IMG/VR virus record: IMGVR_UViG_3300044712_001462
Location: 1-64,000 of that record
Direction: 5' to 3' (one strand)
Length of the DNA stretch: 64,000 bases
Under the pieces are notes generated by a model. That model was given only the letters and a program-made list of their open reading frames with translations. It was not told where the DNA came from and ran no database searches. Shown here one piece after another: positions 2,488-3,456 of this stretch (positions are counted from its first letter, which is position 1; each line of letters starts with the position of its first letter). The position numbers were made by a program, and so were the translations under genes.

Positions 2488-3456
2488 TTACGCCCGATTA
2501 CGTAGTTCCTCACAATGGGACCGATAAGCCTGCGCCACCGTCCCATCCTGATCCACGTTCGCCACGTCCATTCCTTTGCGCACAAAGAAATACTCAGGCA
2601 CAAACAGCTCCTGAGGTGACATGGCGTCGAGCCACACTTCCCGCAAAAACAACACAAACCACGAAGAGGCCCGCAGAGTACCCCTAATAGGATCATCTAT
2701 TTCCAGGTACCGACGCCAGACAAGATTGCCTGGAAGATCCAATTCGGGATAAGCCGGAGCCTCCCGCTTCGAATCCGTCCAGGCGTCAATGAGATTCCAG
2801 GTCCTCGAGGAAGCCTGACCGTATTGCTCCAAGACACTCACATCTCGGTGCCAAACCTTAGAGACAATCGGCGTTCGTAACCCAAGATAGCTGCGCAACT
2901 TAGCAGTGCGTCCAGGACGCGCTAGATCCACATACCATCTGGGGTCCACAATATGCGCCAGCAGCATCTCCATATCGACCCGGCTGTACTGCTGGAGAAA
3001 AGACACCGCCGCATAAGCCGGATGCTTCTCCAGCAAACCTTCTCGGTCTGTCCCGTAGAATACGGAGTTCACCAGCGCATACACCGTCATGTCGTGTCCG
3101 GTGGCCTTGTGCCAGCCACCCAGACACGCATTCAAACCATCTAGCCGGTCCATGCCTTCCAGCACTTCTCCCGGCTCCGTCTGGTACAGCGTTCGGCAGA
3201 ACAACGGAGTACCAATTTCCAATTTCTCTAAACACCCAGCTGCTTGTAACACCCGTCCGAGTTCAATAATCAAACCCGCATTACAAGGCAAACCTAGTAA
3301 ACGTACCTTCTCCGCCTTGGTGCACAACTCATCTGCAGCAAACGCATCAGCGCGTAGATTTGAAGATTTCGCCTTCCCTTTCCCATCCGCGAACCATACC
3401 ACGCCAGAGCTGTCCGCATAGGTACGAAGCTCTTTAACGTGTTTTCCTAGAAGCAT
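2488..3456 (-). CDS. IS110/Nop-domain-like (Tas-like) protein with degenerate N-terminal RuvC-like fold
   Basis: HPAY..VSFL...LLAHIVDPRWY...AKLRSYLGL.P resembles IS110/Nop LLAEIGD..RF....L.SY.GL.P; C-terminal A...FVLFLREVW helix; no DEDD tetrad or catalytic SG motif visible. Confidence 0.6.
   Translation of the reverse strand: MLLGKHVKELRTYADSSGVVWFADGKGKAKSSNLRADAFAADELCTKAEKVRLLGLPCNAGLIIELGRVLQAAGCLEKLEIGTPLFCRTLYQTEPGEVLEGMDRLDGLNACLGGWHKATGHDMTVYALVNSVFYGTDREGLLEKHPAYAAVSFLQQYSRVDMEMLLAHIVDPRWYVDLARPGRTAKLRSYLGLRTPIVSKVWHRDVSVLEQYGQASSRTWNLIDAWTDSKREAPAYPELDLPGNLVWRRYLEIDDPIRGTLRASSWFVLFLREVWLDAMSPQELFVPEYFFVRKGMDVANVDQDGTVAQAYRSHCEELRNRA

Follow-up and report, generated by a model that had tools for sequence, protein, structure and literature searches.

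An unannotated TasR/IS110-fold protein with a degenerate RuvC site in the replication and recombination block of a large soil phage

We have analysed a gene on the minus strand (2488..3456) of a 64,000-nucleotide stretch of DNA, here called the window, which comprises the first 64 kb of the IMG/VR virus record IMGVR_UViG_3300044712_001462. The record is a single contig of 224,528 bp, rated complete by CheckV, and its genes for a large terminase and a baseplate wedge protein mark it as a tailed phage. The contig comes from the assembly of a rhizosphere metagenome, with near-identical pieces also present in groundwater, sludge and wastewater data; the source is an uncultured large soil phage. 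The gene, which is present in a single copy in the phage genome, encodes a protein of 322 amino acids (aa) that combines the two-domain fold of TasR and the IS110 transposases with a degenerate RuvC-type active site. A reading made from the sequence alone, without database searches, had proposed a Tas/IS110-type fold without catalytic residues, and this core structural claim is supported by our results. The ATG-started reading frame on which it was built is correct, and every motif that it quoted is found in the translation.

The gene is situated in a series of minus-strand genes for DNA replication and recombination. Upstream are genes for a SbcC/Rad50-like ATPase (3456..5570), in line with the name given to the adjacent gene in the sequence-only reading, and beyond it an SbcD/Mre11-like phosphoesterase (5560..6702). 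Downstream are genes for a 164-aa protein with a Cas7-like RAMP fold (1982..2476) and a superfamily 2 (SF2) helicase with ResIII and Helicase_C domains (413..1924), the nearest solved relatives of which are, by sequence, XPB-type ATPases. The stop codon of sbcC and the start codon of the gene share one nucleotide in a TAATG overlap (3454..3458), with a Shine-Dalgarno-like AGGCGGA element upstream of the start, an arrangement that agrees with the translational coupling to sbcC noted before. At the other end, 11 nt separate the stop codon from the next ATG. Because of the 1-nt overlap on one side and the 11-nt spacer on the other, the gene has no non-coding flanks that could accommodate a bridge RNA or a TIGR array, as had been pointed out.

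The same arrangement was recovered from 62 loci with a homolog of the gene, 60 of them from IMG/VR (many on contigs of 150-226 kb) and two from contigs of metagenome-assembled genomes (MAGs). The gene order, which is SbcD-SbcC-target-(RAMP)-XPB-like helicase-252-aa protein-DnaB-primase-PolA, is fixed among these loci at 26-33% identity of the target protein. SbcC and the XPB-like helicase were each identified in 61 of the loci that carry the gene (62/62), the 252-aa protein in 60, the DnaB-like helicase in 59, SbcD and the primase in 58 each, the RAMP protein in 49, and a family A polymerase with uracil-DNA-glycosylase (UDG) and 3'-5' exonuclease domains in 47. In the phage studied here, the DnaB-like helicase, the primase and the polymerase are encoded at 218-224 kb, which is the other end of the permuted contig. 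It follows from the fixed order that the gene is a core replication and recombination gene of this phage clade and belongs neither to a mobile element nor to a variable island of defence genes. The fixed synteny, the overlap with sbcC and the lack of flanks also bear out the view that it is not a mobile insertion sequence (IS).

Two other proteins of the block deserve a description of their own. The family A polymerase (L016:16451-19612 (+); G000 218264-221509 (-)) has an N-terminal domain of the uracil-DNA-glycosylase superfamily and a 3'-5' exonuclease domain, with no match to a 5'-3' exonuclease. The 252-aa protein that follows the XPB-like helicase (L036:8385-9140 (+)) is here probably split between positions 1-412 of the window and the far end of the contig, and the sole lead to its function comes from a language model, in which it weakly resembles Mrr-type PD-(D/E)XK nucleases (score 0.72-0.76). 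Archaeal XPB helicases are known to pair with the nuclease Bax1.

The gene belongs to a large family that has not been annotated. A word-indexed search yielded 16 close metagenomic homologs, all unannotated, with 21 invariant columns among them, and an exhaustive profile search retrieved 1,040 representative clusters (50% identity, E<=1e-3), 614 of which at E<=1e-30. All members are about 300-350 aa long with one matched stretch each. In an independent metagenome, from groundwater, the variation of the gene between strains affects third codon positions, and together the homologs, the invariant columns and the third-position variants indicate that the gene is real and under selection. RNA-seq runs that contain the phage were flagged as probably DNA and were not counted as expression. 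No model in Pfam, PHROG, PADLOC or NCBIfam matched the protein even at permissive thresholds. The comparison with the hidden Markov models (HMMs) of Transposase_20 (PF02371), DEDD_Tnp_IS110 (PF01548, at E<=10) and Nop (PF01798), which the sequence-only reading had proposed as a check, came back empty. The family HMM retrieved nothing relevant from the PDB sequences, the solved Tas chains being without similarity detectable by HMMER; blastn and tblastn gave no match in GenBank phages, the viral structures in BFVD contained no relative, and we found no account of such a family in the literature that was searched.

Predicted structures were more informative. An AlphaFold2 model computed with high confidence from the family alignment (predicted local distance difference test, pLDDT, 91.6; predicted TM-score, pTM, 0.90) consists of an RNase H-like N-terminal domain with the topology beta-beta-beta-alpha-beta-alpha-beta, followed by an all-helical C-terminal domain. 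The former covers residues ~5-118 (3103..3444, minus strand) and the latter residues ~123-315 (2512..3090, minus strand). We compared the model with 48,161 PDB chains using VIA, a scan that is independent of Foldseek and includes a second-look alignment. The top match is the TIGR-TasR protein 9mty_B (Z 9.5), with 232 aligned residues spanning positions 8-315, and the second-ranked match, the TasH protein 21kl_A, aligns with the C-terminal domain only (Z 7.5, residues 123-315). The second-look alignment added IS621 (Z 7.6 and 7.2) and ISCro4 (Z 6.2 and 5.8), again across both domains. TasR, IS621 and ISCro4 are the only two-domain matches in the PDB found by VIA, and the alignments with TasR and IS621 extend through residues 292-315. 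According to the model, the C-terminal domain thus has the Nop-like RNA-binding fold of the TIGR-Tas proteins (Z 9.5 for TasR over both domains, Z 7.5 for TasH), and TasR is a closer structure to the protein than IS110; the earlier label of a domesticated IS110 presupposes a direction of descent.

Other structure libraries point in the same direction. Foldseek alone placed TasR first among PDB entries, although weakly (E 0.2), the AFDB clusters returned an IS110 transposase at a probability of 0.80, and a shape search of the ESM Atlas returned first an IS110 cluster, with PF02371 in 100% of its members and 236 residues aligned. A feature search of the Atlas was uninformative, as the Atlas's own model of the protein is poor (pTM 0.23). 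The PDB, AFDB and ESM Atlas, each searched on its own, place TasR or IS110 recombinases at the top for the complete two-domain protein and concur with the assignment of the C-terminal half to an IS110/Nop/Tas-type domain. Of the structures that had been suggested for superposition, TasR and IS621 were matched across both domains, whereas no Nop5 structure is among the matches listed. The longest helix in the model has 24 residues (256-279) and there is no long helical hairpin between the domains of the kind that builds the coiled coil of Tas, IS110 and Nop5. We think that the fold assignment carries weight despite the moderate Z values, because the libraries agree and the alignments cover the full length of the protein.

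The remaining VIA matches are confined to the N-terminal ~110 residues (in the case of Spt6, about 170) and include RuvX/YqgF, the poxvirus resolvase, RuvC, the RuvC domains of TnpB and Cas12, the terminase nuclease, Tex/Spt6 and the MutS connector domain. RuvX, YqgF, the poxvirus resolvase, TnpB and RuvC match residues 5..118 at Z 5.4-7.0.

A comparison of profiles gave sequence support for part of this relationship. Genuine IS110 open reading frames from bacterial genomes served as the IS110 query set; E. coli K-12 and the two MAGs contained no IS110, and other genomes were used as the source. When the profile of 157 diverse family members was compared with IS110 by hhalign, residues 146-230 (2767..3021, minus strand), which hold the core HPAxPA ... 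DPRWY ... KLRSYLGL ... R..W, aligned with the helix-hairpin-helix (HhH) core of Transposase_20 with a score of 35.8 (P 4.8e-4). The highest scores obtained with 150 column-shuffled and 150 block-reversed IS110 profiles were 22.3 and 20.3, respectively. RuvA and Tex, the latter with YqgF and HhH domains, scored 14.1 and 14.2 against the family, whereas the IS110, RuvA and Tex profiles find each other at scores of 35-43. The register of the alignment (GD..rF / L.sy.GL.P / G...lR) is the one that the sequence-only reading had proposed, here reproduced against genuine IS110 proteins and not seen with generic HhH proteins. The profiles thus suggest a weak but specific kinship of the C-terminal domain with IS110. 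For the N-terminal domains there was no hhalign signal (score 9), and the likeness of this domain to IS110 is a matter of predicted structure.

The moderate Z values raise the question of whether the likeness to TasR and IS110 could be convergent or generic, that is, a combination of an RNase H-like domain and helical HhH elements as in Tex and Spt6, with no specific common ancestry. Root-mean-square deviations of 5-6.5 A, the Z values of 6-6.7 obtained for the YqgF and HhH-containing Tex/Spt6 proteins, and the lack of similarity at the level of HMMER and of an hhalign signal in the N-terminal domain would be compatible with such an explanation. However, the Tex/Spt6 matches cover only about 105 residues, as compared to 208-232 for TasR and IS110, the three libraries are in agreement on the best full-length match, and the profile signal is obtained specifically with IS110 and not with RuvA or Tex. 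We therefore regard convergence as very unlikely.

The next question is whether the RNase H-like domain is an active enzyme. Among the 157 family members, the position of the first RuvC aspartate (D15, after strand 1) is occupied by Asp in 54% and by Ala in 26%. Where IS110 carries Glu, strand 4 has R52 (85%) and hydrophobic residues. At the position of E80, 43% of the members have Glu and 36% have Gln, an acidic residue (D/E) is present at position 94 in 52%, and neither beta4 nor beta5 has a conserved acid. The positions that are acidic in part of the family show no co-occurrence (Fisher p 0.34). The RuvC-type DEDD tetrad of IS110 is therefore not conserved in the family, nor is there a conserved acidic site of the kind found in the RuvC/YqgF resolvases, despite the RNase H-like fold. 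No serine is conserved in 80% or more of the members, which leaves no counterpart of the catalytic serine of IS110. The description of the N-terminal half as a RuvC-like fold without its DEDD residues, and without a conserved catalytic serine, consequently stands.

The conserved polar residues are instead R52, N59, H116, D122, Y126, H145, D171, R173, R183, R218, R248, E307 and H314, with H116 conserved in 94%, D122 acidic in 99%, and H145 and D171 conserved in about 99% of the members. One could imagine that the near-invariant H116, D122, H145 and D171 form a non-canonical site in a protein that has the fold of RNase H and RuvC, and that the protein is an active nuclease, such as a structure-specific endonuclease or resolvase, or an enzyme that removes RNA primers or R-loops. 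A replisome in which PolA has no 5'-3' exonuclease is expected to include a separate flap or primer nuclease somewhere, and PolA of this block shows UDG, 3'-5' exonuclease and polymerase domains with no 5'-3' exonuclease match. Yet the canonical RuvC positions are degenerate and do not co-occur, two of the four candidate residues are located in the helical C-terminal domain, and the block already has nuclease activity provided by SbcD and, as a weak lead, by the candidate PD-(D/E)XK protein of 252 aa. We consider an active nuclease unlikely. A more specific idea, a NurA-like end-resection nuclease, came from archaeal operons that combine Mre11, Rad50, HerA and NurA; it was rejected, as the matches include no NurA structure and the family lacks a conserved acidic site.

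The context that we find most telling, and that was missing from the sequence-only reading, is the replisome block together with the neighbouring RAMP protein. This 164-aa protein belongs to a family of at least 280 clusters, which is entirely unannotated. Its model (pLDDT 79.7) has a RAMP fold and matched Csm (Z 11.4), Cmr (11.1), gRAMP (9.6), Csm3 (9.5), Csf2 (9.4), type VII Cas7 (9.3) and Cmr4 (9.1) in VIA, where CRISPR RAMPs account for about 45 of the top 48 entries. All 18 PDB matches obtained with Foldseek at E<=1e-3 are of the Cas7 type (probability 1.00), and the AFDB matches are Cmr6/RAMP clusters. Four residues that are 100% conserved (G134, G138, S140 and G148) are located before the last strand, where they fit the glycine-rich loop of RAMP proteins. 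The model thus presents the neighbour as a RAMP-type RRM fold with a Gly-rich loop. Sequence profiles from Pfam, PHROGs, PADLOC and NCBIfam did not match it and the RAMP model PF03787 was silent; PF03787 was detected in just 1 of 121 sampled genomes, and the profile-profile comparison with RAMP was dropped.

The neighbour shares the RAMP/RRM fold with the Cas7-family RAMPs Csm3, Cmr4, Csf2 and type VII Cas7 over 128-155 of its 164 residues at Z 9-11.4. Unlike them, it is a stand-alone protein whose gene is part of a replisome block; most Cas7 proteins are much longer, and neither an array nor another cas gene was detected in the genome. The RAMP gene is absent from about 20% of the loci, and in a divergent branch that lacks it the helicase gene directly follows the target gene. 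The RAMP protein is thus a frequent but not an obligatory partner.

We searched for arrays and other RNA partners. Tandem Repeats Finder (TRF) and a scan for exact periodic k-mers detected no TIGR, CRISPR or other periodic array in the complete 224.5-kb genome. We also re-implemented the TIGRFinder logic (bioRxiv 10.64898/2026.09.09.750476), generalised to any pair of box C and box D. Neither a chain of >=4 intervals nor any stem-loop unit turned up in the 224.5-kb genome or in the related loci (1.19 Mb), the counts being equal to those of shuffled sequence. The genome-wide search for ~36-nt (18+18) arrays with box C/D-like motifs that had been proposed thus returned no array. There was no match to an Rfam family, and no conserved intergenic element near the module among the related loci, the genomes of which are densely coding. 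The array, Rfam and intergenic searches revealed no RNA partner for the protein, either in cis or in trans.

The largest non-coding gap of the genome is 821 nt long (19350-20170). In its 19350-19940 part, two copies of a 115-nt element (88% identity) lie 210 nt apart. Both contain a strong UUCG-type hairpin, with T-runs after it on the minus strand, and there is a second pair of elements that consists of 33-nt palindromic hairpins. The duplicated elements are probably regulatory or terminator elements, and possibly small RNAs. The gap was considered as a possible home of an RNA acting in trans, but not accepted as a demonstrated source of one, given that it has no Rfam match, an unremarkable folding z-score (-1.6) and no TIGR-like periodicity.

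These searches bear on a further explanation, namely that the protein is a nuclease-dead TasR-like effector that is guided by an RNA, either supplied in trans or unlike TIGR and bridge RNAs, and perhaps assembled with the RAMP protein. TasR is the closest structure, natural TasR proteins of the same size with a dead RuvC domain, such as PateTasR, are RNA-guided repressors (bioRxiv 10.64898/2026.09.09.750476), and the neighbour has the fold of Cas7, which binds CRISPR RNA. Nevertheless, neither the complete genome nor the 62 loci contain a TIGR-like, CRISPR-like or other periodic repeat, an Rfam match and a conserved non-coding element near the module are lacking, and the model has no long coiled-coil scaffold. 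The strict embedding in a replisome block, rather than in a variable island for defence or competition, argues for a housekeeping role, and the RAMP gene is missing from about 20% of the loci. A guided effector therefore seems distinctly improbable to us.

How does the protein compare to the three groups whose scaffold it resembles? With TIGR-TasR (PDB 9MTY and the dead PateTasR), its best structural match, it shares the size of about 300-330 aa and the order of a RuvC-like and a Nop-like domain, and the TasR family is itself associated with phages and includes natural dead-RuvC variants; in PateTasR, the RuvC pocket is filled by R91. The protein differs from TasR in that its genome has no TIGR array, a long coiled-coil scaffold for a dimer is not seen in the model, and the gene resides in a fixed replication and recombination block and not beside a guide array. 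With the IS110 bridge-RNA recombinases (IS621, 8WT6/8WT9; ISCro4, 9T56; PF01548+PF02371) it shares the two-domain fold at Z 6-7.6 and the weak but specific match to the Transposase_20 HhH core, whereas the conserved DEDD and Ser residues, a bridge-RNA flank and IS ends are missing from this single-copy, non-mobile gene. An ordinary IS110 element is ruled out by the lack of DEDD, Ser and ends and by the fixed synteny.

In conceptual terms, the closest group is Nop5/Nop56/Nop58, the scaffold of the box C/D small nucleolar ribonucleoprotein (snoRNP), in which a dead RuvC-like N-terminal domain is also combined with a Nop-type domain; in Nop5, the inactive domain serves as a scaffold and not as an enzyme (PMC11213020). 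However, the Nop model is silent on the protein, and the phage genome has no match to fibrillarin or L7Ae (PF01798, PF01269 and PF01248 all being without a match). Because the features that define IS110, TIGR-Tas (the array) and Nop5 are all lacking, we regard the family as a new branch of the IS110/Tas/Nop5 superfamily, one without arrays, that belongs to none of the three.

Our results show the class of fold, the degeneracy of the active site, the fixed synteny and the absence of arrays and IS ends, and we favor an explanation that builds on them. In this view, the protein is related to TasR, IS110 and Nop5, has neither mobility nor an array, is probably non-catalytic, and would serve as a nucleic-acid-binding adaptor in the replication and recombination block. 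Our confidence in this explanation is about evenly balanced. A scaffold of RNA-guided enzymes appears to have been re-used for another job. By analogy with the dead RuvC-like domain of Nop5, which holds a partner, we infer that the protein, co-translated with SbcC, would act as an adaptor or scaffold that brings the Mre11-Rad50-type nuclease and/or the XPB-like helicase to a specific substrate, be it DNA, an RNA-DNA hybrid or RNA. The setting might be recombination-dependent replication, and in most of the phages the protein may work jointly with the neighbouring RAMP protein.

Some points weigh against the adaptor. The Z values of the predicted model are moderate, given that the typical best Z of the tool is 7-8 when there is no clear match. 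The HMMER-level searches against Pfam and the PDB sequences are empty. Finally, the strictly conserved polar residues could build a non-canonical active site, which would make the protein an enzyme and not an adaptor.

A bolder reading is that the protein, the solo RAMP protein, the XPB-like helicase and SbcCD together form an RNA-dependent machine without an array, which would form or process an R-loop by means of a bound RNA, either a phage transcript or a primer. We consider this a long shot. If it were correct, the machine could for example start or restart DNA replication or direct recombination, and it would, in a housekeeping role, either descend from the RNA-guided systems for defence and transposition or be an ancestor-like relative of them.

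To our knowledge, the IS110/TIGR-Tas/Nop5 scaffold is used for transposition, for RNA-guided DNA targeting or repression and for the assembly of snoRNPs, and each of these three roles depends on a dual-guide RNA. What is new here is a large unannotated family that has the same scaffold but no array, mobility or catalytic tetrad, which points to a fourth, housekeeping use in a globally distributed clade of large phages from soil and water. The main interest lies in the pairing, inside a replisome block, of a Tas-like with a Cas7-like fold, both of which bind guide RNAs in other systems. The family may represent a missing branch for reconstructing the origin of RNA-guided systems, and the module offers a concrete set of proteins with which to test an involvement of RNA in phage replication or in the function of Mre11-Rad50.

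A few other genes in the vicinity of the module are worth mentioning. A CsrA homolog is encoded at 7958-8146 on the minus strand (Pfam CsrA, E 1e-17), and is found near the module on the opposite strand in 11 of the 60 related loci. The minus-strand gene at 8163-8480 encodes a stand-alone protein of 105 aa with the C-terminal domain of the RNA polymerase alpha subunit (PF03118, E 4e-10), a possible decoy or adaptor for host transcription. A homolog of the Thg1-like tRNA-His guanylyltransferases and 3'-5' polymerases is encoded at 9911-10621 on the minus strand (PF04446, E 4e-27), in a region, the first 64 kb, where ARAGORN detected no tRNA genes. The 256-aa protein encoded at 7182-7952 (minus strand) has no family match, and its central and C-terminal parts are extremely rich in Asp and Glu; it could be a DNA mimic or a binder of histone-like proteins. 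In some of the related phages, an HldE-like heptose kinase/adenylyltransferase with PfkB and cytidylyltransferase domains is encoded upstream of the module (L053:1788-3290 (+)), and this is likely an auxiliary gene for lipopolysaccharide precursors.
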